A stretch of 56,699 nt of DNA from Scyliorhinus canicula (lineage: Eukaryota), in the NCBI RefSeq assembly GCF_902713615.1, contig NW_024056007.1, positions 62,001-118,699 on the forward strand. The letters run 5' to 3'. Below, in pieces: positions 5,270 to 55,809 of this stretch (positions are counted from its first letter, which is position 1; each line of letters starts with the position of its first letter). The notes below the pieces were generated by a model. The model was not told the origin of the DNA. It saw only the letters and a program-made list of their open reading frames with translations, and made no database searches. The position numbers and the translations under genes were made by a program.

Positions 5270-6865
5270 CAATTCATTCTTCCGCCAGAGAGAAGATAAA
5301 GACTAATTTTTAGTCCATTGTACTCATTGTTTCATTAAAGGGAGGAGAAAGATTTATTGCTAACCCATTATGTTAATTCCTCCGCCAGAGGGAGGAGAAT
5401 AGGTACTTGATAACCCATTATACTCATTCTTGCATCAGAGAAAGGAGAAGGGTAATTGATAATCAATTATACACATTCTTGCATCAGAGAGACGAGAAGG
5501 GTAATTGATATCCCATTACACTCATTCTTCCATCAGAGAGAGGAGAAGGGTAATTGATAATCTGGTTATACTCATTCTCCCACCAGTGGGAGGAGAAAGG
5601 GTAATTGATATCCCGTTATCCTCATCCTTCCATCAGAGAGAGGAGAAGGGGTAATTGATTGTCCATTATACTCATCCTTCCATCAGAGAGAGGAGAAGGG
5701 GTAATAGATAACCCATTATACTCCTTCTTACATCAGAGAGAGGAGAACCCGTAATTGATAAGCCATTGTACTCATCCTTCCATCAGAGAGAGGAGAAGGG
5801 GTAATTGATTGTCCATTATACTCATTCTTCCATTGGACAGAAGAAAAACGGTAATTGATAACCCATGATGCTATTTCTTCCATCATAGAGAGGAGAAGGG
5901 GTAATTGATTATCCGTTATACTCATCCTTCCATCAGAGAGAGGAGAAGGGGTAATTGATTATCCGTTATACTCATGCTTGCATCAGAGAGAGGAGAAGGG
6001 GTAATTGATTATCCGTTATACTCATCCTTCCATCAGAGAGAGGAGAAGGGGTAATTGATTATCCGTTATACTCATCCTTCCATCAGAGAGAGGAGAAGGG
6101 GTAATTGATTATCCGTTCTACTCATCCTTCCATCAGAGAGAGGAGAAGGGGTAATTGATTATCCGTTATACTCATCCTTCCATCAGAGAGAGGAGAAGGG
6201 GTAATTGATAACCCATTATACTCATTCTTCCATCAAAGAGACGAGAAGGGGTAATTGATTATCCGTTATACTCATCCTTCCATCAGAGAGAGGAGAAGGG
6301 TAATTGATAACCCATAATTGTCATTCTTCCATCAGAAAGGAGAAGAATAATTGATAACCCTTAAACTAATTCTTCCATCAGAGAGAGGACATAGACATAG
6401 ACATAGAATTTACAGTGCAGAAGGAGGCCATTCGGCCCATCGAGTCTGCACTGGCTCTTGGAAAGAGCACCCTACCCAAGGTCAACATCTCCACCCTATC
6501 CTTATAACTCAGTAACCCCACCCAACACAAAGGGCAATTTTGGACACTAAGGGCAATTTATCATGGCCAATCCACCTAACCCGCACATCTTTGGACTGTG
6601 GGAGGAAACCGGAGCACCCGGAGGAAACCCACGCATACACGGGGAGGATGTGCAGACTCCGCACAGACAGTGACCCAAGCTGGAATCGAACCTGGGACGC
6701 TGGAGCTGTGAAGCGATTGTGCTATCCACAATGCTACCGTGCTGCCTTAGAAGGATAATTGATAATCAATTATACTCATTCTTCCATCAGAGAGAGGAGA
6801 AGGGGTAATTGATAACACATTATACTCATTCTTCCACCAGAGGGAGGAGAAAGGTAATTCCATTT
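5270..6865. repeat. 50-bp minisatellite (more than 20 units), interrupted by a SINE
   Basis: Unit atccgttatactcatccttccatcagagagaggagaaggggtaattgatt, near-perfect at 5900-6300, resumes after 6750. Confidence 0.95.
6389..6746 (-). mobile_element. HE1/V-SINE-like SINE
   Basis: Full head-core-tail with (catag a/c)n tail. Confidence 0.85.
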
Positions 6866-10399: not shown

Positions 10400-10760
10400 C
10401 ACCTGACGAAATCCCTCAGAATTCATTGGGCACTATCAAGCCATCTCCCCAAATGTGCCCTTCACACTTATCATCTGCCCAAATTCACTAGGGAATCCTT
10501 TCTCCCTACTCCATTCCCTCTGATACCATCACCCTGAACTCACTGACCATCACCCCAGGGATCCTCTTTCCCTGCTCCATTCCCTCTGATACCATCTCCT
10601 GAACTCCCTGAGCATCACTCCAGGGATCCTCTCTCCCTGCTCCAGTCCCTCTGATACCATCTCCCTGAACTGGAAGAACATCGCTTGGGGGATCCTGTGG
10701 CCCTGCTCCCTCCCGTCTGACTCCATCCCCCTGCTCATTCCAGGGAATCTATCTTGCTGC
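10400..10760. repeat. Degenerate tandem repeat (about 60-bp, ccctctgataccatc motif)
   Basis: Motif recurs several times here and again at about 10985-11075. Confidence 0.6.
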
Positions 10761-12330: not shown

Positions 12331-14490
12331 CATAAGAACATAAGAACATAAAAACTAGGAGCAGGAGTAGGCCATCTGGCCCCTCGAGCCTGCTCCGCCA
12401 TTCAATTAGATCATGGCTGATCTTTGTGGACTCAGCTCCACTTTCCGGCCCGAACACCATAACCCTTAATCCCTTTATTCTTCAAAAAACTATCTATCTT
12501 TACCTTAAAAACATGTAATGAAGGAGCCTCAACTGCTTCACTGGGCAAGGAATTCCATAGATTCACAACCCTTTGGGTGAAGAAGTTCCTCCTAAACTCA
12601 GTCCTAAATCTACTTCCCCTTATTTTGAGGCTATGTCCCCTAGTTCTGCTGTCACCCGCCAGTGGAAACAACCTGCCCGCATCTATCCTATCTATTTCCT
12701 TCATAATTTTAAATGTTTCTATAAGATCCCCCCTCATCCTTCTATATTCCAACGAGTACAGTCCCAGTCTACTCAACCTCTCCTCATAATCCAACCCCTT
12801 CAGCTCTGGGATTAACCTAGTGAATCTCCTCTGCACACCCTCCAGCGCCAGTACGTCCTTTCTCAAGTAAGGAGACCAAAACTGAACACAATACTCCAGG
12901 TGTGGCCGCACCAACACCTTATACAATTGCAACATTACCTCCCTAGTCTTAAACTCCATCCCTCTAGCAATGAAGGACAAAATTCCATTTGCCTTCTTAA
13001 TCACCTGTTGCACTTGTAAACCAACCTTCTGTGACTCATGCACTAGCACACCCAAGTCTCTCTGAACAGCGGCATGCTTTAATATTTTATCGTTTAAATA
13101 ATAATCCCGTTTGCTGTTATTCCTACCAAAATGGATAACCTCACATTTGTCAACATTGTATTCCATCTGCCAGACCCGAGCCCATTCACTTAACCTATCC
13201 AAATCCCTCTGCAGACTTCCAGTATCCTCTGCACTTTTCGCTTTACCACTCATCTTAGTGTCATCTGCAAACTTGGACACATTGCCCTTGGTCCCCAACT
13301 CCAAATCATCAATGTAAATTGTGAACAATTGTGGGCCCAACACGGATCCCTGAGGGACACCACTAGCTACTGATTGCCAACCAGAGAAACACCCATTTAT
13401 CCCAACTCTTTGCTTTCTATTAATTAACCAATCCTCTATCCATGCTACTACTTTACCCTTAATGCCATGCATCTTTATCTTATGCAGCAACCTTTTGTGT
13501 GGCACCTTGTCAAAGGCTTTCTGGAAATCCAGATATACCACATCCATCGGCTCCCCGTTATCTATTGCACTGGTAATGTCCTCAAAAAATTCCACTAAAT
13601 TAGTTAGGCATGACCTGCCTTTTACGAACCCATGCTGCGTCTGCCCAATGGGACAATTTCTATCCAGATGCCTCGCAATTTCTTCCTTGATGATCGATTC
13701 CAGCATCTTCCCTATTACCGAAGTTAAACTCACTGGCCTATAATTTCCTGCTTTCTGTCTACCTCCTTTTTTAAACAGTGGCGTCACGTTTGCTCATTTC
13801 CAATCCACCGGGACCACCCCAGAGTCTAGTGAATTTCGGTAAATTATCAATAGTGCATCTGCAATTTTCCTAGCCATCTCTTTTAGCATTCTGGGATGCA
13901 TTCCATCAGGGCCAGGAGACTTGTCTACCTTTAGCCCCATTAACTTGCCCATCACTCCCTCCTTAGTGATAACAATCCTCTCAACGTTCTCACCTGTCAT
14001 AGCCTCATTTCTATCAGTCGCTGGCATGTTATTTGTGTCTTCCACTGTGAAAACCGACCCAAAAAACCTGTTCAGTTCCTCAGCCATTTCTTCATTTCCC
14101 ATTATTAAAACTCCCTTCTCATCCTCTAAAGGACCAATATTTACCTTAGCCACTCTTTTTTGTCTTATATATTTGTAAAAACTTTTACTGTCTGTTTTTA
14201 TATTCTGAGCAAGTTTACTCTCATACTCTATCTTACTCTTCTTTATAGCTTTTTTAGTAGCTTTCTGTTGCCCCCTAAAGATTTCCCAGTCCTCTAATCT
14301 CCCAGCAATCTTTGCCACTTTATATGCTTTTTCCTTCAATTTGATACTCTCCCTTATTTCCTTAGATATCCACGGTCTATTTTCCCTCTTTCTTCCGTCC
14401 TTCCTTTTGTTGGTATAAACCTTTGCTGAGCACTGTGAAAAATCGCTTGGAAGGTTCTCCACTGTTCCTCAACTGCTCCACCATAAAGTC
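12331..14490 (-). mobile_element. Young 5'-truncated CR1 LINE, RT nearly intact
   Basis: ORF 12432-13787 ([25 protein letters not shown]) continues in frame with ORF 13794-14462 across one TGA; (cataagaa)n 3' tail. Confidence 0.95.
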
Positions 14491-19652: not shown

Positions 19653-22600
19653 ATGGCTAATCGGCAGGGGAAGGGGGCGGGTCGTCCCGTGACCCGGCTG
19701 ATCACTTGGAACGTGAGGGGCTGAATGGGCCGGTCAAGAGATCAAGGGTATTCTCACACCTGAAGGGACTGAAGGCTGATGTAGCAATGTTACAGGAGAC
19801 CCATTTGAAGGTAGTGGACCAGGTTCGCCTGAGAAGGGGGTGGGTGGGACAGGTGTTCCACTCTGGATTGGACGCAAAGAACCGGGGGGGTGGCGATTCT
19901 GGTGGGAAAGAGGGTGTCGTTCGTGGCGGAGGAGGTGGTGGCGGATAAGGAGGGTAGGTATGTGATGGTGAAGGGTAAGCTGCAGGGGGAGAAAGTGGTG
20001 ATGGTCAACGTATATGCCCCGAACTGGGATGACGCGGGTTTTATGAGGCGCCTATTGGGCCTCATTCCGGGACTGGAGGCAGGGGGCTTGATCATGGGGG
20101 GGGGACTTTAACACAGTGCTGGACCCCGGGCTAGACAGATCGAGCTCAAGGACCAATAGGAGGCCGGCAGCGGCAGAAGTGCTGAGGGGGTACATGGAGG
20201 CAGATGGGAGGAGTAGACCCATGGAGGTTTGGTAGGCCGAGGGCGAGGGAGTATTCCTTTTTCTCCCACGTCCATAGAGTGTACTCCAGAATCGATTTCT
20301 TCGTGTTGAGCAGGGGACTGATCCCGAGGGTACGGGAAGCTGAGTACTCGGCCATTGCGATCTCTGATCATGCACCACATTGGGTGGATGTGGAAATGGG
20401 GGAGGCGCGGGACCAGCGCCCGCTGTGGCGGCTGGATGTGGGGCTGTTAGCGGACGACGAGGTGTGTAAAAGGGTCCGGAAGAGCATTGAGAGCTATCTG
20501 GACTTGAATGACACGGGTGAGGTGCAGGTGGGGATGGTCTGGGAGGCCCTGAAGGCAGTGATCAGGGGAGAGCTGATCTCCATAAGGGCACACAGAGAAA
20601 GAAAGGAGAGGCAGGAGAGGGAGAGGCTGGTGGGGGAGCTATTGGAAGTGGATAGGAGATATGCGGAGGCACCAGAGGAGGGGCTGCTGGGAGAACGGCG
20701 CAGCCTGCAGGCCAAGTTCGACCTGCTGACCACCAGGAAGGCAGAGACGCAGTGGAGAAGGGCGCAGGGCGCGGTCTATGAGTATGGGGAAAAGGCGAGC
20801 AGGATGCTGGCACACCAGCTTCGCAAACGAGATGCGGCTAGGGAGATTGGGGGAGTGAAGGAGAGGGGCGGGAAGGTAGTGCAGAAGGGGCAAGAAGTGA
20901 ACGGGGTCTTCAGAGATTTTTACAAGGAGTTGTATCGGTCTGAGCCGCCGACGAGGAGAGGGGGAATGGAGGACTTCCTAAACAAATTGAGGTTCCCAAG
21001 GGTCCAGGAGGGGCTGGTAGAAGGGCTGGGGGCGCCAATAGGGCTAGAGGAGCTAGTCAAGGGAATAGGTCAGATGCAGGCGGGGAAGGCGCCGGGGCCA
21101 GATGGGTTCCCGGTGGAATTCTATAAGAAAAATGTGGACTTGGTGGGACCGGTACTGGTACGAGCCTTTAATGAGGCGCGAGAGGGGGGGGGTTCTGCCC
21201 CCGACAATGTCGCAGGCTCTGATCTCCCTGATATTGAAGCGGGATAAAGACCCCATGCAGTGCGGGTCCTACAGGCCTATCTCGCTTCTGAACGTGGATG
21301 CCAAGTTGCTGGCAAAGATCCTGGCAGCTAGAATAGAGGATTGTGTGCCAGGGGTAATCCATGAGGACCAGACGGGGTTCGTGAAGGGGCGGCAGCTCAA
21401 CACGAACGTGCGGAGATTGCTGAATGTAATTATGATGCCGGCAGTGGAGGGGGAGGCTGAGATAGTGGTAGCGCTGGACGCGGAGAAGGCATTCGATAGG
21501 GTGGAGTGGGGGTACCTGTGGGAGACGTTGGAATGGTTTGGGTTTGGGGAAGGGTTTATTAAGTGGGTGAAGTTGCTCTACTCGGCCCCGACGGCGAGTG
21601 TAGTGACAAACGGGAGGAGGTCGGAGTATTTCGGGCTCCACCGAGGGACCAGGCAGGGATGTCCCCTATGCCCCTTACTTTTCGCACTGGCGATTGAACC
21701 GTTGGCGATGGCACTGAGGGGTTCAGGGGGGTGGAGAGGACTGACTAGGGGAGGGGAGGAACATCGGGTATCGCTGTATGCGGATGATCTACTGCTGTAC
21801 GTGGCAGACCCAGAAGGGGGAATGCCGGAGATAATGGAACTATTAGCAGAGTTTGGGGACTTTTCGGGGTACAAACTAAATTTGGGCAAAAAGCGAGGTT
21901 TTGTGATACACCCGGGGGACCAGGGAGAGGGTATTGGGAGACTCCCCTTCAAGCGAGCAGGAAAGAGCTTTAGGTACTTAGGGGTGCAGGTGGCAAGGAA
22001 CTGGGGGACCCTCCACAAGTTGAACTTTTCCAGGCTGGTGGAACAGATGGAGGAGGAATTTAAGAGGTGGGACATGGTACCGCTGTCGCTGGCGGGGAGG
22101 GTGCAGTCAATCAAAATGACGGTCCTCCCAAGGTTCTTGTTTCTATTTCAGTGCTTGCCCATCTTCCTCCCTAGGGCCTTCTTCAAAAAGGTGAAGAGTA
22201 GCATCATGAGCTACGTGTGGGCGCACGGCACCCCAAGGGTGAGGAGGGTCTTTTTGGAGTGGAGTAGGGACAGTGGAGGGCTGGCACTACCCAATCTCTC
22301 GGGGTATTACTGGGCGGCAAATGTGTCAATGGTGCGCAAGTGGATGATGGAAGGGGAGGGGGGCAGCTTGGAAACGAATGGAGAGGGCGTCCTGTGGCAA
22401 CACAAGCCTGGGGGCCCTAGTAACGGCACCATGGCCGCTCCCCCCCACGAGGTACACCACGAGCCCGGTGGTGGCGGCCACCCTCAAGATATGGGGGCAG
22501 TGGAGGCGACACAGGGGGGAAATGGGAGGTCTGTTGGCGGCGCCAATAAGAGGGAACCATAGATTCATCCCGGGGAACATCGACGGGGGATTTCAGAGCT

Positions 22601-23455: not shown

Positions 23456-23869
23456 GATAGGCGTTCGGGGTCGTGGCAGCAGCAACCCGGGGGGGGGGAG
23501 GGGAGGGGAGGGGGGGGGGGGGGGAGGGGAGGCGGAGGGGGGGGGGGCCCAGCAATTGGCCGGGGGGGTGGCCATGCACGACTGTAACGCGGGCAAGTCT
23601 GCTCGTTGCTCATGTCTGAACTGTAGGCTGCCTTTTTTGTTTAAGTTGTTGCTTGGGGGGGGGGGGGGGGGGTGGGGGGGAGGAATGGTGCGCGCGAGAG
23701 GGCGGGCGAGGGAGGGATATTTGCCTAGAGGGACTGTGTTGTAACTAATCTAAAAAATTAGTAGGGGTAAATGTCTGTAGGAAAAACATCTTTCAATAAT
23801 AAAATTATTTAAAAAAAAAAAAAAATACTCCACGAGGGAGGCATGGTGGTGACAAGATTTAATGCAATA

Positions 23870-24070
23870 TAAAAATGCATATGGTCTCGTGGACATTTTT
23901 ATTAATTTTTCCAATTAAATGGTAATTTAGCGTGGCCAATTCACCTATCCTGCACATCTTTGAGTGGTGGGGATACACCCACGCAGACACGGGAAGTGAC
24001 CCCGGCGGTTCGAACCCAGGTCCTCGGCGCCGTGAAGTAGCAGTGCTAACCACTGCGCCAGCGTGCCACC
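23870..24070 (-). mobile_element. V-SINE-like SINE
   Basis: Same family as 2999-3226. Confidence 0.75.
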
Positions 24071-24129
24071 CTCGTGGAGTATCAATAACAATTGTCCACC
24101 ACGACACCCAGGTCTCGTTGCACTTCCTG

Positions 24130-24960
24130 TTGTCCTAAACTGCCACCATTCTGAGAATAATCTGCCTTCCTGTTTTTTGCCACCAAGGAGGGTAATCTCA
24201 CATGCACAGTCGTTGAAGGTTGGCATGCAGGTGCAGTAGGCGATGCTATGCTGGCCCTCAGATAGGGAGGGTTGAGCATTGGAGATGGGATGGGCTTTCT
24301 ACCGTTATAAGGAGCCTTGGTGAGGCCACACCTTGAGTATTGTGTGTAGTTTTAGTCTCCTAGTTTGAGGAAGGACATTCTTGCTTTTGAGCGTGTCCAG
24401 CGAAGGTTCACCAGAATAATTTCCGGGATGGCAGGCTGATATATGAAGAAAGACTGGATCGGCTGTGCTTGTACCCACTGGAGTTCAGAAACGATGAGAG
24501 GGATCGCATAGAAACATATAAAATCCTGATAGGACTGCACGGGCTAGATGCAGGAAGAATGTTCCCGATGTTGTGGACGTCCAGAACTAGGAGTCACAGC
24601 CTAAGAATAAGGAGGTTAGCCATTCAGGACTGAAGATGAGGAAGAACTTCTTCTCTCAGAGAGTTGTGAACTTGTGGAATTATCTACCACAGAATGCCGT
24701 TGGGGCCAATTCGTTGGATATATTCAAGAGGGAGCTGGACGTGGCCCTTGCGGCTAAAGGGGCTGGTTTAGCACAGCTGGCTTGTAATGCAGAATAATTC
24801 AGCAGCGGCGGGTCCAATTCCCGTACCAGCCTCCCAGAACACGCGCCGGAACGTGGCGATGAGGGGCTTTTAACAGTAACTTCATTGAAGCCTACTTGTG
24901 TCAATAAGCCATTATTATTATTATTAAAGGGATCAAGGGGTATGGACAGAAAGTGGGAGT
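24130..24960 (+). mobile_element. CR1 3' fragment with nested SINE (about 24760-24928, taaaggg TSD)
   Basis: RPHLEYC-type motifs; insert gggctggtttagcacag...(tta)n flanked by taaaggg. Confidence 0.75.
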
Positions 24961-25392
24961 GTGAGACTGCATTTGCATTTATCAGCCATAAACATTTGAA
25001 AGTGGGTGCAGGGCGCGAACAACCGAATGGCCGACTCCTGCACCTGTTACTATGTTTCTATGTGATATATATTAGTAAGCGAACAAATGCAGATATGAAG
25101 TAGAAGAAATTTAAACACAGGTTTGTGAGAACATGGAACCTGTTGCCACATGGAGCTTGGAACAGAGAGCATTGAGACATTTATGGAAAGACTTGGAAAT
25201 ACTGGAAAGAGAACAGAATTGATCGACACAGGGAGCTGGATGGGAAATGGTCAGTTAGATATCAGGCGGGAGGGGACAGTCTGGTCTGGAGTAGACGCGC
25301 AGATACAATTTAGTTGGGCCGAATGGTCCATTTCCTCTTCCGCAATTTCTATACTATGTAACCGCAGAGAATACTGCACACAGAGATCCATG

Positions 25393-25712
25393 GAGAGAAT
25401 CAGTCGTGGGCGGAAATAATTGTAATTGTCAGAGAGCCGTAAGAGGCAGTTTCCCAGTAAGTAACAGTAAAACCCACTGCGGAAACTGAGCAGACTGAAC
25501 CCAACCGACAACTGTGAGATTTTGGACAAGTCCCACGCTGTAGAGAAACACAACAGCACAAAATAAATTTAGAAAAAAATCGAACCTAACAGTAAATACA
25601 TAAATTTAAAGAGAAACGGAGAAAAAAATTTTATTCATTGAAGAAAGTAGACACATGGATGAAAAGATAATCAGAAACCGGGAAATGTTAAACAGTGATT
25701 GACCTCTGACCA
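25393..25712 (+). repeat. About 320-bp element, inverted copy at 28507-28835
   Basis: Shared blocks ctgcggaaactga.ca.actgaacccaaccgacaa and gatgaaaaga.aatcagaaa-ccgggaaatgttaaac, ending in tgacctctgacca. Confidence 0.8.
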
Positions 25713-26299
25713 CCCATGTTCAACATCAGTTTGGCCCTATTGTTGCTGATAAATCGCAGTCAAATTCTGTTGGATATTTCTGGACGAAGTGATAAAATCC
25801 AGTTGGGTTTCTCTTGGCCAATTATTTTTGGAACAGCTTGACTCGTGGATGAAAAAATGTTCCATCGGTTTTGTTTCTCAACACCGAAAGTAGGAACTAA
25901 AAGGGACATCCATGGTAGAATCAAACAGAAATAAGGATGGCATTCGGTCCCTAGCGTAAATACCGTGCTTTAATATATGAACTACTATTCCACCATGTTT
26001 TTCCCATAGCCCTGTTATTATCCTTTTGACCTTTAACCGTTTGTAAACCACTGTTGAATCAGCTCTCTCCCCCCATTCTGACAGTGCATTCCAGATCGTT
26101 AGAGCTTACTGGGTGGAATAAAATATCACCTCAGTCCCCAGTGGTTTGCATTGTAAGAATGTTATTGTGACAGTGAATACAATTCAAATGCAATTAACGG
26201 AATAACATTGCCACTGAAACTGAGAAATTCACGCGATTGGCAAATACCCCAGGTTATTCAGTGGTTAAACCATTTCTCTTGTGCCTCCAGATTGAACAT

Positions 26300-26480
26300 G
26301 GTGTGGATTACAGACGCAGTGACCTGCCTGGCGGTGATTTAACCTGAGGATCACCACACCTCAGGCGTGGGGCAAGGTTGCGAAGGTGAGACCTTCACAA
26401 ATTACCTCAGCCAATATGGAAATTGACCACGCGATGTTGGCCATCACCACCCACCTTGCCAGCCAACTAAGTTAAACGGG
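26300..26480 (-). mobile_element. tRNA-derived SINE (second family)
   Basis: Matches 10770-10982. Confidence 0.6.
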
Positions 26481-26529
26481 CCCCAATAGCGAAGATTACA
26501 GACACACTGATTACCGAGAGAGTGATAGG

Positions 26530-26900
26530 GAGGCCGTGGCCTAATGGTATTCTCGCTGGGCGAGTAATTTCTTGGCCTAGAGTCATTTGCTGGCAGCTGG
26601 GTTTCGAATTCCACAATAGCAGATGGCGAAATTCGAATTCAGTGAAAGAAATCTAGAATCAAAAGTCTCAAGGTGACCATGAAACCGTTGTGGATTATTG
26701 GAAAACCTCATCTGGTTCACGAATGTCCTTTCAGGAAGGAAATATGTCTTCCTACCTGGACTGGTCCACATATGACGCCAGATCCACGGTGCTTGACTCC
26801 TTTTTTCCAGGAGTCTTTCTCCTCTTAAATGCTGTTATTATCCTTGATTCTGATTCAGGATGGACAATAAATGCTGGCCCACCCACGAGGTCCACATGCG
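26530..26900 (+). mobile_element. Deu-domain SINE (SacSINE1/AmnSINE-like)
   Basis: catctggttcac.aatgtccttt.aggaaggaaat...cct.acctgg.ctgg.c.aca.atgac.ccaga, recognised Deu core. Confidence 0.7.
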
Positions 26901-27059
26901 ATGGGCGGTATAAAAAATATGCAGAGCTGCAAAAAATCTGAAAATGGCAAGGATTAAAGACAGACAGAGATGTATCACAGAGAGAGCTGTGTGAGAAATT
27001 GTGTGTCTGTCTTACTCACCAATATTAGATGTTTCTAAAGCTTTCTCCCTGCTCTGTAT

Positions 27060-27617
27060 AACTGTGTGTGTGTGTAATCCTGACCACGTTCAGGTTTCTG
27101 TACAGCTCTCTCCGTGCTCTGTCTCACTGTGTGTGTAATCCTCACCATGTTCAGGTTTCTGTACAGCTCTCTCCGTGCTCTGTATCACAGTGTGTGTAAT
27201 CCTCACCATGTTCAGGTTTCTGTACAGCTCTCTCCGTGCTCTGTATCACTGTGTGTGTGATCCTCACCATGTTCAGGTTTCTGTACAGCTCTCTCCGTGC
27301 TCTGTATCACTGTGTGTGTGATCTTCACCATGTTCAGGTTTCTGTACAGCTGTCTCCGTGCTCTGTATCAGTGTGTCTGTAATCCTCACCATGTTCAGGT
27401 TTCTGTACAGCTCTCTCCGTGCTCTGTATCACTGTGTGTGTAATCCTCACCATGTTCAGGTTTCTGTACAGCTCTCTCCGTGCTCTGTATCACTGTGTCT
27501 GCAATCCTCACCATGTTCAGGTTTTTGTACAGCTCTCCGTGCTCTGTATCACTGTGTCTGCAATCCTCGCCATGTTCAGGTTTTTGTACAGCTCTCCCCG
27601 TGCAATGTGTCACTGTG
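27060..27617 (-). repeat. 61-bp minisatellite, each unit a 23-RSS
   Basis: Minus unit CACAGTG-atacagagcacggagagagctgt(23)-ACAGAAACC-22 nt linker; nine heptamer+nonamer copies plus a degenerate tenth. Confidence 0.95.
27579..27617 (-). other. 23-RSS of the supporting Vdelta
   Basis: CACAGTG (27611-27617), 23 nt, ACAAAAACC (27579-27587): perfect consensus. Confidence 0.97.
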
Positions 27618-27922
27618 CTCTGCTCCGACTCAGTGCACAATAATACACAGCAGAGTCGCTCAGTTGTGCTTTGAATATCTTTAACTGGCTGATTTTCCCG
27701 GTTGTATCGATAGAAGCAGAAATTCTCCCTCCAGCAACTGTTTCTTTATTCTCCTCTCCTGAAGTGTGGCTCCGAAGCAGGCATTCCGGAGCCTGTCCTG
27801 GGAACTGACGGTACCAGTGTACTGTGTACTGGCAGAACCCTGAATATCGCAGCTTAAAGTAACCGTGTCACCGGCAGCAGGGTTTTGGAGAGGCAGACAC
27901 TTGGAAACCAATGAACTTAAAT
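27618..27922 (-). pseudogene. TCR Vdelta segment, putative NAR-TCR supporting V; frameshift in CDR1
   Basis: ttccag acceptor, phase 1; DLSSLVSKCLPLQNPAAGDTVTLSC...[shift]HWYRQFPGQAPECLLR...QLSDSAVYYCALSRSR; no leader seen between it and the joined NAR exon. Confidence 0.88.
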
Positions 27923-28506
27923 CTGGAAGTTGAAAATATAATTGTTTATTTTGTTTTCACCACTGTTTATCCAGGGGAATTTGGCAATCGGGCGAATAGC
28001 TCTGATCTTTTGCCCTATTGTTATCATGTTCATGATGTACTCCATGCTACTCAAATATGACCCAGTGGGGAATGAGAGGATTTTATTTATTTTACACACC
28101 AAGTTCGAACAATCTGGAATGTATTGTCAGAATGGCTGGTGGAAGCTGAAGCAATAGTGACTTACAAATGGGTGATGGTCAAGTACCGGGGCAGGAAGCA
28201 AAGCCGGTTTCTGGGGAAAGTTCATGGGCCGTGGGAAGAATAGGACTGTATGTGCATAGAGGCAGGATAGGACAAATGCCATCCTTGCGCTTTGTGTGAT
28301 GATTCTATGATGTATGTTACATTTCAGAATCTGCTTAACATGGTGAGCGGCAAACCCAGGGTACGTTGTAAAAGCAGAGGCAATCAGCTCCCAGAAATGA
28401 TTATCCCAGAGCAATTCAGCTGTATTCTATTACTGCACACAACAAGATCAAACAAAACAAATAATTGCGTTTCCTCAACAAGACTGGCACAGCCGACGTT
28501 GTACAC

Positions 28507-28835
28507 CACTGGTCAGAGGTCAATCACTGACTGCAGTTTAACATTTCCCGGATTTCTGATTGTCTTTTCATCTGTTTATCTATTTTCCTCTATCAGGAAA
28601 ATATTTTCTCTGTTTTTCTGTTTAATTTGGAATATTTTGTGAGTTTAATATTATTTCTGCATTTAATTGGCTGCTTTCGCTTCTCACAATCGTGAGAACT
28701 GCTGAAAGTCTCTGAATTGTCGGTTGGGTTCAGTGTGTTCAGTTTCCGCAGGTGGTATTACTGTTACTCACTGAGAACCGCCTTTTCCGGCGCTCTGACA
28801 ATTACAATTCTTTCTGTTTATTAACTGATTCTCTC
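28507..28835 (-). repeat. Inverted copy of the 25393-25712 element
   Basis: See partner feature. Confidence 0.8.
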
Positions 28836-29369
28836 CCCCGTTCAATGTGAGGAGTTCTCGAAGCATTACATTGTAGACAATCTGCCTAAATGGAATAGAC
28901 CATTCGGCCCAACGGATTTATGTTGCACCAATATCCAGACCTACCTCCCCATCCTGAAATCTAACAGCTTATTTGCATTCATGTCCCTGTGTCGGTGTAC
29001 TCCGTTATCCCTCCAGTCTTTTTCATATGTCCCAATATACTACTGCTCAAATTATTCCAGGTGGCAGTAAGGCCATTCTGACAGTCTTGTGTGAAGTTAT
29101 TAGCCTTATGTTTTTATTGTTTGATTGATGATTATCACATATCAATGTTTCATTGCACTTAACTCCGCCACAAATAACGATTGTTCCCCATCCACCCTTC
29201 GAACCACCAGAATTTGAAATACTTCTATGAACACTCTTGGTGTCTCTCGGTCTTCCAGGGAAAAGGTGGCCCGCTATGTTCAACATTTCCAGAGATATGT
29301 GGGTTGTTGTTGACATCTTTTGTCAGAAAGAGGAAGGTAGTGCCGCAGCGACATTGTTAAAGGACTAAT

Positions 29370-29470
29370 AATCCAAAGATCCAGGGCAGATGGTAAAAGC
29401 CCATTTGGTTCATTAATGTCCTTTAGAATAATCTGTCACCTCTGGCCTACATGGACATCTTATGCCCTCA
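29370..29470 (+). mobile_element. Deu-SINE core fragment
   Basis: cccatttggttcattaatgtcctttag...ctggcctacatg. Confidence 0.55.
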
Positions 29471-29710
29471 GGGATGTGCAATAATAGTTTATATACATGC
29501 AACCACTGAATAACCACTGTTCTTTGATATATAGAATCCGCACATGGACAATAATAGATTGACTGATGAAATGTCTCCTCTTCTTCGTTCTATTGGATGA
29601 CACATGTTCCGAAGTTGTGACTCAGAATTATAGACATTGCTGACTGGGCAAACACCACAAATCTGCTCTGTCAAGTCTCTTGCGAATATTACGTGTTCTA
29701 ATGAGATATA

Positions 29711-29872
29711 GGATTCTCCAGTTTTCCTGTGTGGCGCACCCTCGCCAGCACCGAGATGTTTTATTCCGGCATCTGGCCAATGCTTCCCATTGTCGTCATG
29801 CCACGCCGTCGGGAAACCCGTGGGCGTGGGTGCACTGCCGGCGGACCAGAGCATCCCGCCAATGGAGAATTT
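29711..29872. mobile_element. MITE-like GC-rich element
   Basis: Terminal inverted ggattctcc / ggagaat; internal ccacgccgtcgggaaaccc. Confidence 0.45.
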
Positions 29873-30612
29873 TGTTGGTCTTTGGCTTCTAAATTTTAAG
29901 GAAGATAGACTTTACATACATATCTCTTCTGATGCCTTTATATTTGGAATCAGTATAATGAACCTTTGTTTAATTCCTTAAAATAATGAAAATCCTTTCT
30001 AAAGTTTGTGTCCAAATCTTTTCACAGCATTCCAGACTGGAGTCTATCGCAATTCCTGCTAAAATCAAAACTTATTCCAGTTGACGTTCTGTACCGAGGG
30101 ACCCTGGTTCTTCATCTGAGGTAGTGGGTAGTAACCAGCAAGAGGTTTCCATGCCTATTTTTTGGTCTGATGCCACGTGACGTCATGGAAACGGGAGTCA
30201 ATGTTGATGACTCCAAGGGAGCTCCATCCTGACGTATGTTACCGTGCCGCCACCTGTGGTTCAGTCCTTCCGATGGGATAGAACATACAAAGGGAAAATA
30301 ATGATGATGTCTGGCACATGGTCTTGGAGGTATGATTTGACGAGTATGTATTGGTAAGTCTGTTGCTTGAAAAGTCGGTGGAATATCTTTCCCAATTTGG
30401 CATAAGCCTCCACAAGTTAGTAAGGACAAAAAAGCAGAGTCGCGGAGGCTGGGCGTCCCATCATCATTTCTGTTCCCTGGTTCGATTCCAGGCGGTTGTC
30501 TGACGGCCTGTGAGATTTTATTCATTTTGCTAGACTTCGTAGCGATTTTGTCCAACTGCCCGGTTTGCTAGGCCATAATTTAAGTTCATAGTTAATTTAA
30601 AAACACACTCCT

Positions 30613-30830
30613 TGTGTCTGGAGTCACGTGTGGTTTGGACCTGGCCCGAATGGCAGATTTCCTCCTCAAAGGACAAGTAGTGAAGCTGAGATCTTGCAAC
30701 AACATTGGTTTCATGATCACCGTACCGCGACTAGCTTTACATTCCAGACGTTTTTATTAGCTGAACTTAAATTTAATTGGTGGAATTTGAAGCTATGTTG
30801 CCAGACCACTACTCTGGGTCACTAGATTAT
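30613..30830 (-). mobile_element. Deu-domain SINE, decayed
   Basis: ctggagtcacgtgtgg...ggcagatttcct...aaaggaca.tagtgaa, reverse of the Deu core. Confidence 0.6.
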
Positions 30831-30921
30831 AAATGAAATAATATTACCGTTAGATTTCCACTTCCCCAAGGTAAACATTAACGTGGACTGTCTATTCACG
30901 TCACAGTTTGGGGACACTCAC

Positions 30922-31269
30922 CGGCTGTGATATTTACGACCGTTCCGGGTCCGTCTGCATCGCCTTCTTTCGAAACGCTATTTCCACATCCATACTTGTA
31001 CTGAGCTTTACAGTAATATGTGGCGGTGTCTTCGATTATCGCATCACGAATTTCCAGCGAAAATATATTTGCTGCTTTATTCACCGACACATTAAACCTT
31101 CCTCCGGCGGAGATCCGCTCCCGTTCTGTACCAGTTTGCTTTTTGCTGAAGAAACTTCCAGCCTCTAAGCTGAAATAATCACCATTGAAACCACAGGTGA
31201 TGGTGACAGACTGACACTCCGTTCTGGTCTCCGCTTCCGGGCTCTGGGTCACTGGCTGACTGAAAGATT
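30922..31269 (-). CDS. NAR-TCR (VNAR-like) V-D-J exon, already joined, open frame
   Basis: ttccag acceptor to G|GTGAGT donor, 348 nt, phase 1-1; VTQSP..VTITC..RISAGGRFNVSVNK..FSLEIRD..EDTATYYCKA-CDR3-DGPGTVVNITA; short VNAR-type FR2/CDR2; no RSS inside. Confidence 0.9.
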
Positions 31270-32143
31270 CTGGAAATTAAATAGAGACAGTTTAATGGGC
31301 CATCAGAGCCGAACCACACAACGGGGCTAAAACCCCAGACAGTGTCTATAAGTGAAATGGACTCGAGAAGATTTATGTTAAATCCACACAATGTGCGTCA
31401 GTTTGATCGGTATTCTCGGGGCAAGCAGACACAAAGAGTGAAAACAAGAAGGATTCCCATCGTTATGTTGCCTGGAACTGATGGTCTATATCACAGAGAG
31501 CTGGGCACTGCAGTACTGTATTGCTCTGGGAGACTGGGCCTCAGTGCGGGACTGAAATATTTCACGGCGTGAGGTTTAATTGCCGAGGGTGATGTGCCAC
31601 AGACCGTGCATGGGACGCACGGTTGCCGTCTTCCTCAGTTTGAATAAGTGACAGGCTTAAGAAGGGACCGGCAGTTTTTTGTTGCGTAATTAGGCCTGTA
31701 AGCCTGATTTGAAGACCCCCCTCTCTCTTTATTTGTCTGATGTAGAGTGGCCGGGGAAGGAAGAGAGATTTTAGAGGAGTTTGTCTCACTCGCCCCATTC
31801 AGCAATGAGCTGAGAGCTCCGCTCATATGTTTTAATAAGTGGTAGTTTGAGAATGTGGGATTTTGGAAAATTCCTTCTGTCCAATATAATTCTAACTGTG
31901 TTTAAAAAAGACCTGAAAATTCTGAAAAACTCAGCAGATCTGGCAGCAACTATGGAGAGTGAGAGTTAAATGATCGAGTCCAAATATGTCTCTGAAGAAA
32001 CGAACTATGATTATTCCTCTTTCCAATCGCACCGCCTGGATGTTTAAAGAGTTAATTACCTGCAAAGAGTCGCATTCAGAGTATCATATTTCATCATTGG
32101 TTTTGTCTATACACGCTGTGTTTGTGTAACTTACCTCTTCACT

Positions 32144-36399: not shown

Positions 36400-36453
36400 C
36401 AGCTGTGACAAGTCACCCCCGATCCCGATCCATCCACATATCGATCAGACCAC
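36400..36453 (-). pseudogene. NAR-TCR J segment with +1 nt insertion
   Basis: WSDRYVDGSGSGVT-(t)-VTAG|gtaagt; aligns with DGPGTVVNITA of the joined exon. Confidence 0.85.
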
Positions 36454-36492
36454 CACAGCGACATCACTCTCAGTCTCCTCTGTACAAGAACC
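36454..36492 (+). other. 23-RSS of the NAR-TCR J
   Basis: CACAGCG (36454-36460), 23 nt, ACAAGAACC (36484-36492). Confidence 0.9.
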
Positions 36493-36801
36493 AGCGATAG
36501 CTGGACAAGCTATAAATCACCATCAGTCACATGAAGGTGTCCAACTGTTGAGTGGATTTAAATAAATGGACAAGATCCAATGTTTCAAAGTACCTCTTTA
36601 TTGAAAGCGTTGTTTGTTCGCCCTGACTTGCTACTAAATGGCCGTGGGTAGATAATATTCTCTTCACATAAACCGTGAAAATGTCAAAGGACGATGAGAA
36701 TGCTGGAAATTAAAATAGAATTAAAAGAGATTGCAGTCTCATAACATCTATTCCAGAATTTATTATCGTGGCCTGGAGAATTGTTATTTAGATTGTACAG
36801 A

Positions 36802-36829
36802 GGTATTTGCTCAGGTCTGTCACACTGTG
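36802..36829 (-). other. 12-RSS at the 3' end of the NAR-TCR V
   Basis: CACAGTG, tgacagacctga (12), GCAAATACC (7/9 consensus). Confidence 0.8.
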
Positions 36830-37123
36830 ACACGGCAAAATAGTAAGCAGTACAGTAATAGGACGCAGTGTCTTCAACTATCAGATTCCGAATTACCAGT
36901 GAAAATGTATTTTTTGCTTTATTCACCGACACAACAAATCTCCCTCCGGTCCAAATGCGCTGCCGTTCTATCCCAGTCTGGGATTTTCTAAAGAAATATC
37001 CACCTTGGAATGAATATGCGTTCCAAAAACTACCACCACTGAAAACACAGGTGATGGTGAGAGGCTGACACTCCTTCCTGGTCACCGCTGCCGGGCTCTG
37101 AGTCACTGACTGACTGAAACATC
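36830..37123 (-). CDS. NAR-TCR (VNAR-like) V or joined V-D segment, open frame
   Basis: ttccag acceptor; SVTQSPAAVTRKECQPLTITC...GGRFVVSVNKAKNTFSLVIRNLIVEDTASYYCTAYYFAV; about 400 bp of upstream intron homologous to that of the 31.3 kb exon. Confidence 0.88.
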
Positions 37124-37930
37124 CTGGAAATTAAAGGGACAGTTTAATGGCCCATCAGAGCCTGAACCACACAGCGGGGCTAAAACCCCAGACAGGGTCT
37201 GTAATTGAGATGGACTCGGGCAGCTTTATATTAAATCCACACAATGTGCGATTTGATCGGTACTTCACGGGGTAAACAGACACACAGAGTCAAAGCAAAG
37301 AAGATTCCCATCGTTCTGCTTGCCTGGAGTTGATAGTAAAAGGCCGGGAGCTGGAGACTGCAGACCTGGACTACTCGGGGAGACGGGACCTCAGAGCGGG
37401 ACTCTAATACTTCAGGGGTCGTCGAGTTCATATGCAGAAGACGGTGGTTCCCGCTTCCCGGCCTATAGCTCTGAGTTGTGTGAATAAGGGACCGATTTAA
37501 AAAAAAGGAAAGACCAGTTTTTCTTTCCTCTACTCGGGTTGTGATCGTTGTGTGAAATCCACTCACATTCATCTTCAGAACAGGAGGGCGGAGCTGCGGT
37601 TTCTTCTAATAGTAAAGGGTACGCCTTCCTCGAGGTTAAATTGTGAGGCATTCCAGTGACATTGCCAAAATGTTGGCTGCAATAGACAACATTCAGGTGC
37701 TTCTGATCACTTATTAAAGAACTTTCAACGTGGGCAGCTCAGCCGATTAGAATTCAAAACGCTCCGCCTTTTACTTGCTTTTGTGTTGCCGCACGATTGA
37801 TTTTATATCATTGCCTGGATACGTCAATGCACGTAGTTCGGTACATGTGTCTAATGCGGTTGCCCAGTCCACTGGAGGTCGCTCTCTGATAACCTGCGAA
37901 AGATTGCGATCCCATTCTCCAGAATATTAC

Positions 37931-43128: not shown

Positions 43129-43472
43129 AGTTTTTGTACAGGTTCAGCTCAGCTCTGTGTCTCTGGGTTTCAGCACGCAGTAATGCACGGCATAGTCTGC
43201 CGGTTCTGTTTCGGCTACTTTCAGCGGGAAGGTGCGCATTGATTCATCGGGATCTGCGGAAACATTGTCCCCTGGAAAGCTCTCTATGTTCCCGGTGAAT
43301 CTGATTCTCTGCAGCAGATACGCAATTGATCCGTCGGGACAGTGAAAATACCAGGATAGACACAGAGCATTGATGCCTGTAGTGGTATAATTACGGAACA
43401 ATTGGACATTCTTCCCTTCAACCACTGGGATTGCAGACAGTGTCTGTGATACAGAAACTCCTCGACAAAGTC
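43129..43472 (-). pseudogene. TCR V pseudogene, inverted relative to neighbours
   Basis: VSVSQT..VEGKNVQLFRNY (first Cys lost), LSWYFH, DYAVHYCVLK; heptamer eroded to CCCAGAG, 23 nt, ACAAAAACT. Confidence 0.8.
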
Positions 43473-43731: not shown

Positions 43732-44755
43732 ATGCGTCTCCCCGTTCTCGCTTTGATCTGGGTAGCATCCATTGCGGGTAAGAAGATTAAAACGTGAAAA
43801 ACAACAGAGTAATTTCGAGAGAAAGACATTTGAAAAGCAAAGAGCTGATTATAGTCATGTGCTTAAATCTGGTTTAACCTCACTACGAATATTCGGAAAA
43901 TATCATAAATGCAAAGGTGAAAATGGAAAATGCAATTTATAAGGATCCTATCAGATTTCGAAAAGTAACTATCGGAAATCCTTGTACATTCCGGGATTCT
44001 TTTCTCGAGCAAAGAATCTCTGGATCAACCTAAAAAAGTATTTTAAATGTTGAAGCTGCTTCAGAGGTTTAAACACGTGAAGGTTTTTTTTTTCCAATCT
44101 GGACGATTTAAAATCGAAGAATATAAAGTTATATAAGTCCAAGAGATATTTCTGGAAAAACTTCTCAACATAGAGAGTGTGGGTATCACTGTCACAGGAG
44201 GGTTGGAGTGAATATTAGAAATACATTTCAGGGGAATCTAAATGAACAGATTATGGAGGAAGGAAACTTTCAGAGGGTGAGAGGAAGAAGGCTGAAGGTG
44301 GCTGACGGGGGTGCAAACCCGACACTGATCAGTTTTGTCTAATGAATTTTTATCCTAAGTTCTAAATTCGATCTAATGTGATAGAAAACTGACCACAATT
44401 TCTCGCCCGTTCTTGCTCGAAGCAATGGAGATTCTGTTACTCAGCGGAAATCCTCACTCACACGGACAGCGGGAGAAAATGTCACTTTAACCTACACCTA
44501 CACCAGGAATTATTTTTACTTGTTCTGGTACCGTCACTCCCCAGATAGACAGCCCGAGTTTGCGCTCCGGAGATACACGGACGGCAGTGACGACTATAAA
44601 GCGGATTTCGCTCAGAGACGGTTTTCTGATACACTGCAACAAGCAGAGAAGTTGTACCGATTGACCATCTCGGATCTGCCGCTGTCTGACACCGCGGTCT
44701 ATTACTGTGCATTACTCACAGTGATAGCAACGAGTGAGAGCATCGTACAAAAACT
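43732..44755 (+). pseudogene. TCR Valpha/delta with leader (43732-43777) and V exon (about 44418-44716); Cys23 to Tyr, acceptor lost
   Basis: MRLPVLALIWVASIAG|gtaaga; GDSVTQ..ENVTLTYTY..LFWYRH..DTAVYYCALL; CACAGTG-23-ACAAAAACT; no phase-compatible AG found. Confidence 0.88.
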
Positions 44756-48736: not shown

Positions 48737-49320
48737 ATGTGGATGTTCAGTCTCTGGGTAGTGTGAGGACCATTGCTGACAGGTAATTGGAGATTAAATA
48801 TAATGAGGGTTAATTATAATTGGGGATTAAATATAACGGGGGAGTAAATGCTTTTTAATTTTCTCTGATTTATCAAGCGTGGCTTATTCTTACACTATCT
48901 GGCCTGATCAGTTCCGATGCGGTTATTTTTTTCAGATTTCAATGATGGAGCTTTTGACTAATGGCGCTTTTTTCAGATTTGACAAATGGAGATTCTGTCA
49001 GTCAGCGGCTCCCCTTAGACAATAAGATAGAAGGAGAAGCGGCGACATTTACCTGTACATATGGTACTACTGGAAATAGATATAGGTTATTTTGGTACCG
49101 ACAGCGCCCAGATACACAGCCTGAATTCATCGTTTGGAAAAGCTCCTGGGGTTGTGAGTATAAAGCAGATTTTGTTACAACCCATTTTTCTGCTCAGCTC
49201 CAGAACGGGAATAAATTCACCAGTTTAACCGTATCCAGTCTGCAGCTGACTGACTGCCGTGTATTATTGCGCCTTCAGCCTCACAGTGATAGAAACCATT
49301 CTCACTGCTGTAGTAAAACT
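48737..49320 (+). pseudogene. TCR Valpha/delta pseudogene with leader (48737-48782, in-frame TGA) and V exon 48977-49281
   Basis: MWMFSLWVV*GPLLTG|gtaatt; GDSVSQ..ATFTCTY..LFWYRQ; 2-nt loss before AVYYCAFS; CACAGTG-23-AGTAAAACT. Confidence 0.88.
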
Positions 49321-54843: not shown

Positions 54844-55809
54844 ATGGCTACATTTGTTACCTGGAATGCAACAGTCAGTCGACACTGGACAGGGGTCAAC
54901 TCATCCAATCATACTGTAAATGCAAGTCTTGGGATCCCCGAAGCAGTAGAAACGTTCGTCCTCCCTTGTCTTCTGAGCTTCACTGTCGTGTTGGGCATTG
55001 TTGGGAACTCTATTTCATTGTGGCACATCACAAGATTAAAGAAAGTTTCATCAGCAACTGATGTTCTCCTGTTTAATTTAACCATCGCCAACGTCTTTGT
55101 TATCCTGGCTTCAATATTTATTCTTATTCACTTGATCCCAGCATGTAAGTTCATGAAGTCGCTTCTTGACGCCCAACTTCTGATCGGTTTAGTCAACCTG
55201 TATGGCAGCCCATTATTCATGTCCTGCATTGCAATTGACCAGTACATCGCGGTTGCCCATCCCATTAGGTCTCATGCTTGGCGAAGACCCCGATACTACG
55301 TCGCCCTGTCCATTGTAGCATGGCTGGCAGTGTTATCCCTGAGTCTGCCGGTCTTTCATTTTGACAGAAACGCTGCAGATGAAAACATCTCCAGCGAGGA
55401 TACGATTATAACGAGGAAATCCTGGCAAATCTTCATGCTATTTTGTGAAGTTATATCATTTGTCATCCCAGTTCTGGTCCTGTTGTTATGCTATGCTCTG
55501 ACAATAAAGAAGCTGATAAAAGTGGGAGCTGGGAAGGAATCCATGGAGCTGATGAAGACGAAAGTGCGAAGGAACATTTTAGGCATTCTGGCTCTCCTGC
55601 TTTTGTGCTTTGCCCCTTTTCACATTGCAGAACTGTATTTTATGAGTGCGGTTCTGATAGATCCACTGAATCGAATGTCCGCTTTTTATCCGTGCCATGT
55701 TAAGATTTACACTTGGGCCCTCACTTCCTTTTCTGCTTTCCTTAGTCCCATGCTGTACGTTTTCAGGTCCCAGAACTTTCAATGGAGAGCACGTTGCTGC
55801 GTCGTGTGA
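54844..55809 (+). CDS. Intronless class A GPCR, P2Y/LPAR-like orphan, 321 aa
   Basis: Seven hydrophobic segments; GIVGNS (TM1), VNLYGSPLFMSCIAIDQY (TM3), CFAPFH (TM6), SPMLY (TM7); N-glycosylation sequons; ttacag acceptor (AG at 54807-54808) just upstream. Confidence 0.9.
   Translation: MATFVTWNATVSRHWTGVNSSNHTVNASLGIPEAVETFVLPCLLSFTVVLGIVGNSISLWHITRLKKVSSATDVLLFNLTIANVFVILASIFILIHLIPACKFMKSLLDAQLLIGLVNLYGSPLFMSCIAIDQYIAVAHPIRSHAWRRPRYYVALSIVAWLAVLSLSLPVFHFDRNAADENISSEDTIITRKSWQIFMLFCEVISFVIPVLVLLLCYALTIKKLIKVGAGKESMELMKTKVRRNILGILALLLLCFAPFHIAELYFMSAVLIDPLNRMSAFYPCHVKIYTWALTSFSAFLSPMLYVFRSQNFQWRARCCVV

Follow-up and report, generated by a model that had tools for sequence, protein, structure and literature searches.

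The 23-RSS of a supporting V-delta exon in a NAR-TcR cassette of Scyliorhinus canicula is the first of nine tandem recombination signals that lie head to tail behind a single V segment in use. In the stretch of DNA analysed here (the window; 56,699 nt, positions 62,001 to 118,699 of contig NW_024056007.1), these signals form nine tandem 61-bp units, one of them of 59 bp, at 27071-27617 on the minus strand, each laid out as a heptamer of 7 nt, a spacer of 23 nt (21 in unit 2), a nonamer of 9 nt and a flank of 22 nt. The array is probably best understood as a tolerated, long-lived and concertedly evolving minisatellite that competes for RAG and has no selected function.

Structure of the array

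The beginning of the array coincides exactly with the 23-RSS of the leaderless supporting V-delta exon (27922-27618), the heptamer of unit 1 occupying 27617-27611, directly after the V end (...TATTATTGTGCACTGAGTCGGAGCAGAG). Tandem Repeats Finder (TRF) delimits the repeat at 27067-27617, with a period of 61, 9.1 copies, 94% matches and a score of 941. The RSS of unit 1 (27579-27617, minus strand) consists of CACAGTG, a 23-nt spacer and ACAAAAACC, with zero mismatches to the consensus 23-RSS pattern; the flank of unit 1 and units 2-9, which contribute eight more 23-RSS copies, are placed by TRF and unit alignment at 27071-27578 on the same strand. All nine positions at which a sequence-only reading had located heptamers (27611, 27550, 27491, 27430, 27369, 27308, 27247, 27186 and 27125) hold a CAC heptamer, and its description of full RSS units in one orientation was confirmed by script for heptamers, nonamers and spacers alike. 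On the minus strand, the heptamer reads CACAGTG in seven of the nine units, CACACTG in one (27369) and CACTGTG in another (27186), CAC being kept in 9/9. The nonamer is ACAAAAACC in units 1-2 and ACAGAAACC in units 3-9, and the spacer measures 23 nt in 8/9 units, with unit 2, at 21 nt, falling outside 23 +/- 1 nt. A scan of the window for consensus 23-RSSs (<=3 mismatches) returned 14 sites against 0.65 expected, a number reached in 0/100 shuffles, and nine of these 14 sites make up the array.

Beyond unit 9, a decayed tenth unit with the heptamer CACAGTT (27060-27066) and a gapped nonamer region is recognized by local alignment at 27010-27070 on the minus strand. This degenerate copy had been pointed out before at 27060, and its local alignment to the unit consensus bears it out, with a score of 57, compared with at most 24 among 1000 shuffles. 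Only the heptamer of unit 1 abuts a coding segment; in units 2-9, the heptamer adjoins the 22-nt flank of the preceding unit, and the unit flank closes with a CA run adjoining the heptamer that follows.

The repeat shows properties of a minisatellite, with a head-to-tail unit in the 10-100-bp range and, in the pairwise difference matrix, a homogenised core and diverged edge copies. Pairwise differences among units 3-8 amount to 0-5 positions, whereas unit 1 departs from the consensus at 8 positions and unit 2 at 5; these two together constitute a proximal subtype defined by the ACAAAAACC nonamer and a flank ending in GCAGA. Such a pattern, uniform in the middle and divergent towards the edges, is what unequal exchange typically leaves. 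In units 3-9, differences from the consensus are found at 2/49 heptamer, 2/161 spacer, 0/63 nonamer and 6/154 flank positions; with numbers as small as these, the outer heptamers are not visibly better protected than the flank. Derivation of the unit flank from the 3' end of the V was considered and rejected, 912 of 2000 shuffles scoring equally well. Inspection of the unit by eye for a CTCF-like or other factor site revealed none that was convincing, and neither an Rfam search over 24000-32000 nor a tRNA scan over 26200-27000 returned anything.

Expression and joining of the supporting V

The supporting V-delta exon of the NAR-TcR cassette (27618-27922, minus strand) is identified by a Pfam V-set match of 76 residues (27846-27619, E=2.9e-10) and by an RNA contig, and is preceded by an AG splice acceptor at 27924-27923. 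In the window, its frame reads ...YYCALSRSRAQ and then meets a stop inside heptamer 1, in agreement with the earlier proposal that joins at outer copies would be non-productive. In the short interval from the first cysteine to WYRQ, at 27846/27847, the window copy also carries a 1-nt frameshift.

Direct evidence for use of this V comes from a 408-nt RNA contig of another sample and study, the run of which behaves as RNA since introns are uncovered in it. The contig contains 30977-30922, the end of the NAR V-D-J exon, followed by 27922-27622; the splice (30922>27922) skips 2999 nt, has GT..AG borders on the minus strand and keeps the frame (...GPGTVVNITA-D-LSSLVSKC...). Over 27922-27622, the contig shows zero mismatches to the window and one additional base after 27846, with which a single open frame runs from the acceptor to ...YYCALSRSR. 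It departs from the germline after 27622, 4 nt from heptamer 1, and the next 30 letters read in frame as PDILELMFGS, giving the in-frame junction CALSRS-PDILELM-FGS with its J-type FGS motif. The supporting V supplies the second domain of an expressed NAR-TcR chain and has undergone productive joining, with the cut at the first heptamer and 4 nt trimmed. Its assignment to the delta chain is based on the NAR-TcR architecture, since the contig stops before the constant region; a PDB sequence search with the V matched only generic antibody and TCR V domains and does not discriminate delta from other chains, and a search of a large protein collection with the V gave no match. The J of the rearranged transcript is absent from the window. 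In three RNA raw-read runs, no reads were found on the cassette, one run matching only at a repeat (29394-29424).

Since a transcript from another sample carries the extra base and reads through, the frameshift of the window represents an allele or an assembly error, and the candidate reading of a dead V, suggested by the frameshift before WYRQ, is overruled by an exactly matching transcript with the extra base after 27846. On either side of the 27846-27847 indel, at 27831 and 27849, contigs break off in the DNA of the likely source sample. The transcript also bears on several points raised by the sequence-only reading. The identity of the segment as a supporting V is upheld by the joining of the NAR V-D-J donor (30922) to the acceptor (27922). 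Silencing of the V by the array is contradicted by a productive, in-frame transcript that uses this exact V, cut at the first heptamer, and the fallback explanation of neutral slippage after pseudogenisation fits poorly with a V that is in use.

The exon spliced to the supporting V is a germline-joined NAR V-D-J exon (30922-31269, minus strand), with an open frame ending ...YYCKAQYKYGCGNSVSKEGDADGPGTVVNITA, a GT donor and a Pfam V-set match (E=5.7e-6). This exon is itself expressed, being covered by RNA contigs, and has its leader near 31415-31460 on the minus strand; one contig (31308-31480) covers the NAR leader intron as well.

Age and recurrence of the array

An inverted duplication (68-87% identity), its arms delimited by blastn and an inverted-repeat search, is centred on the array's distal end. 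The right, or live, arm (27925-29021, minus strand) comprises the 3' portion of the intron that separates the supporting V from the NAR V-D-J exon, and the left, or dead, arm (25197-26292, plus strand) is a mirror copy of this intron upstream of the supporting V. With blastn, 25197-26144 aligns to 29021-28062 over 986 nt with 67.7% identity (E=4.9e-68), and the inverted-repeat search resolves seven collinear blocks between the arms, 74-87% identical. Homology between the arms, at 76%, reaches the mirror copy of the splice acceptor (...TCCAGATT). The dead arm is devoid of the V exon and of the first RSS, and no V-like sequence was detected in 24000-27005.

The dead arm does, nonetheless, retain decayed remains of the array on the plus strand. 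Directly after the mirror acceptor, at 26293-26322, stands a unit flank followed by the heptamer CGCAGTG, identical to the unit consensus at 27/30 positions, a score reached by 0/500 shuffles. A second flank-to-heptamer junction, with the heptamer CACACTG, is found at 26486-26511 (26 nt, 88% complementary to the live units), and approximately 1.3 units of opposite orientation, flank included, lie at the inner end of the arm (26922-26990), about 75% identical to the unit and aligning to it with a score of 49, where 1000 shuffles gave at most 26. These fragments are separated by unrelated insertions, and their heptamers (CGCAGTG, CACACTG and CAGACAG) keep CAC in 1/3 cases vs 9/9 in the live arm. 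Two segments of the dead arm, 26700-26746 and 26841-26887, show a contig depth of 1300-2270 vs ~5 and correspond to inserted high-copy interspersed repeats.

Altogether, the dead arm holds at least three decayed flank-to-heptamer junctions, and the arms are 24-32% diverged. Since the order of flank and then heptamer occurs only in a tandem arrangement, the array predates the inverted duplication. Judged by this sequence comparison, the array is old, older than a duplication whose arms have diverged by about a quarter to a third; it is also older than a paralogous supporting V, ~92% identical, which a separate contig represents.

Short-read contigs document the array in independent data and extend it beyond this locus. 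A 306-nt contig, recovered in three runs of one sample, matches 27533-27831 with zero differences and contains the V, unit 1 with its flank and, from unit 2, the heptamer and 17 nt of the spacer, while the inner units are matched exactly by contigs of 48-60 nt. Exact unit contigs of 51-52 nt have a depth of 115-129 vs ~5.5 for the single-copy V, a 21-23-fold excess that is to be taken as an order of magnitude, since contig depth is no copy number, and the high-depth stretches in question occur just 1-3 times in the window. Some contigs, moreover, connect units to flanks that are absent from the window. The RSS array recurs elsewhere in the genome, and its initial treatment as a one-off no longer holds in view of the dead mirror copy in the window and of a unit depth ~20-fold over single copy.

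Within the window, the array is confined to the supporting kind of V, and the other V segments have one RSS each: three conventional ones, at 44717 (+), 49282 (+) and 43167 (-), and a NAR V with a 12-RSS at 36829 (-). Among the conventional segments, all of TCR alpha/delta type, the first (44400-44755, plus strand; V-set E=8e-12) is intact and has a good single 23-RSS, the second (49282-49320, plus strand) shows a frame change near its 3' end, and the third (43129-43167, minus strand) has the spoiled heptamer CCCAGAG. The NAR V belongs to a second NAR leader and V exon at 36400-37330 on the minus strand, whose 12-RSS (36802-36829) is oriented towards a J-like segment. The latter carries a GT donor and a 23-RSS (36454-36492), and no supporting V intervenes before the next cassette.

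Proposed competition for RAG and alternative explanations

The competence of the outer units was judged by published assays with mouse or human RAG. In these assays, heptamer position 4 is unconstrained, CACAGTG-AT and CACTGTG-AT both being top-ranked (CACNGTG then AT), and enriched heptamers have a pyrimidine-purine step at positions 6-7 (PMC9723617), a step that CACACTG retains. Coding flanks that are AC or purine-rich are favourable and pyrimidine runs unfavourable (PMC9723617); the outer-unit heptamers are preceded by ...ACACA or ...GCAGA. Functional nonamers have purine-A/T-purine at positions 4-6 in common (PMC12711392), and these positions read G-A-A in ACAGAAACC, which is the natural nonamer of all human V-kappa-II genes (PMC2212273). 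In cis-competition, an A2 segment with ACAGAAACC beat L6 with consensus heptamer and nonamer (14:86), and inner vs outer position had no effect in the substrates (PMC2212273). On this analysis, competence as RSSs is predicted for seven or eight of the outer units, while unit 2, with its 21-nt spacer, is doubtful.

In the explanation regarded here as the probable one, the 23-RSS of a functional NAR-TcR supporting V-delta was amplified in tandem along with the next 22 nt. Unequal exchange or slippage between units would then drive the evolution of the array and, since exchange keeps the inner units near-identical, these would stay complete RSSs as the edge copies decay. In lymphocytes, the V-proximal unit 1 would yield the productive V-(D)-J joints, and the other eight same-orientation signals, predicted to be competent, would compete with it for RAG, as can be inferred from the RAG data of mouse and human. 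Cutting at unit k would produce a coding joint made up of the V and k-1 whole units and, because of the stop in heptamer 1, the joint formed at any outer unit would be non-productive. Such a joint would, on the other hand, keep the V with an intact RSS, making a further attempt possible if a 12-RSS partner remains downstream, and use of unit 1 would let the remaining array depart on the excision product. The net effect of the array is plausibly neutral to a handicap, lowering the productive yield of the V, and no mechanism by which the outer signals might raise productive joining is apparent to us. Since outer joints probably just cut the productive yield of the V, the array is interpreted as a tolerated passenger and not as a device selected for a purpose. 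Some considerations weigh against this interpretation. On the one hand, the persistence of the array and the contrast in CAC retention between the arms (9/9 vs 1/3) could equally reflect selection. On the other hand, equal use of the nine signals would entail a roughly nine-fold cost to the V, which sits uneasily with an expressed gene. The lone transcript is a mature mRNA, and selection and nonsense-mediated decay favour unit-1 joins.

Selection of the array as a cis-regulator of supporting-V rearrangement is possible, though rather unlikely. The array could serve as a RAG sink or tuner, restricting or postponing joining, or as an accessibility platform, in which nine A-rich nonamers at a 61-bp spacing would exclude nucleosomes beside the working RSS. 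A regulatory role accords with an array older than the 24-32% diverged inverted duplication, with its recurrence in the genome at a unit depth of ~20-fold, with the lack of arrays on the conventional V segments of the window, and with heptamers that keep CAC in the live arm and have mostly lost it in the V-less arm, which gained insertions. The platform version would also draw on the reported action of nonamers, in part, by repelling nucleosomes (PMC12711392). The live-array heptamers, however, are no better conserved than the flank, and the near-identity of the units is explained by recent homogenisation. Furthermore, a short, broken array ceases homogenising, so that the decay of the dead arm needs no selection, and a sink brings no obvious benefit. 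The broader proposition, in which tandem RSS arrays belong to the NAR-TcR supporting-V cassette as a conserved, selected component and act as a built-in RAG competitor or accessibility element, is more doubtful still. If it were true, the arrays of the cassettes would set the frequency or timing of the second rearrangement of a doubly assembled receptor, and signal copy number would provide a previously unknown layer of cis-control in V(D)J recombination.

A direct part of RAG in shaping the locus, by which a germline cut at an outer unit would have left a hairpin coding end that was copied into an inverted duplication centred on the array, is improbable. The centre of the duplication does lie at the distal end of the array, beside the heptamer-like CACACAA, and the same cassette contains a germline-joined NAR exon. 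In cartilaginous fish, genes of this kind are ascribed to the action of RAG in the germ line. The present junction is nevertheless asymmetric, a heptamer-like site abutting a nonamer-like site, and the arms are too diverged for the original breakpoint to be read; a fold-back duplication at any break would look alike, and the deletion of the V in the dead arm stops away from any heptamer border.

The least credible alternative is that the array, or its length, results from mis-expansion of the repeat by the assembler: while the copy number of nine and the 21-nt spacer are taken from the assembly, since no contig spans the array, and a 1-nt indel relative to the transcript in the nearby assembly makes local errors possible, an independent short-read contig that crosses unit 1, from the V to the start of unit 2, shows zero differences, exact matches to inner units occur at high depth, contigs linking units to different flanks indicate that several arrays exist, and unit-specific variants (CACACTG, CACTGTG and the 21-nt spacer) argue against a simple computational expansion.

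The array shares features with several known systems. The 23-RSS of canonical TCR alpha/delta V segments likewise consists of CACAGTG, a 23-nt spacer and ACAAAAACC abutting the V coding end, but a canonical V has a single RSS, whereas here the signal and its 22-nt flank are repeated nine to ten times. A canonical single 23-RSS is also given for the NAR-TcR supporting V-delta, which is likewise a leaderless exon spliced to the NAR V domain and joined at the V-proximal heptamer (Criscitiello, Saltis and Flajnik, 2006, cited in PMC12227049). Functional cryptic RSSs occur in mouse gamma-satellite and CA repeats, and RAG-dependent signal ends have been detected at them in cells (Cowell et al., 2003; PMC2193808). 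The likeness of the gamma-satellite to the shark array extends to the head-to-tail arrangement of RSS-like sites, and the shark units also begin with a CA run; yet the mouse sites are chance look-alikes far from antigen-receptor genes, whereas the shark units have a bona fide V RSS origin, consensus-grade parts and the correct orientation beside an expressed V. The closest experimental counterpart is found in the cis-competition plasmids of Nadel et al. (1998; PMC2212273), which likewise set same-orientation RSSs, including ACAGAAACC, against one partner. Those plasmids carry two signals, each with its own coding end, whereas the shark locus presents nine on a chromosome, with a coding segment only at the first. 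The earlier remark that no described RSS minisatellite was known agrees with full-text literature searches, which turned up no genuine RSSs in a natural array behind a V, some key shark work lying outside their scope; an avian Ig preprint mentions minisatellites only as an issue of sequencing depth.

Artificial substrates are normally used to study the choice of RAG among close signals, be it through linear scanning or through collision. With nine near-identical 23-RSSs in the correct orientation, placed 61 bp apart behind a V in use, the catshark locus offers a natural chromosomal substrate for such competition, and thereby a natural test of how RAG chooses among neighbouring signals and of the cost of the wrong neighbour. 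Should copy number correlate with usage of the V, signal dosage would be a new way to shape a repertoire; should it not, the arrays would show that a redundant load of RAG targets is tolerable in the long term without loss of function.

Several further features of the window lie apart from the cassette. An unrelated 50-bp minisatellite of 22.5 copies occupies 5274-6389, with 2.2 more copies 360 bp away (6749-6859), and a tandem repeat of 65-66 bp is present in 2.8-3.7 copies at 10490-10733. Two reverse-transcriptase ORFs (Pfam RVT_1) are found at 12432-13787 on the minus strand (E=6e-34) and at 21102-22562 on the plus strand (E=1.6e-36), the latter within an 18-24 kb block of 56-60% GC and strong positive GC skew that contains long G runs (23489-23547 and 23655-23680). 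At the edge of the receptor locus, an intronless ORF of 321 aa (54844-55809, plus strand) contains a rhodopsin-family 7TM domain (Pfam 7tm_1, E=6.7e-28).
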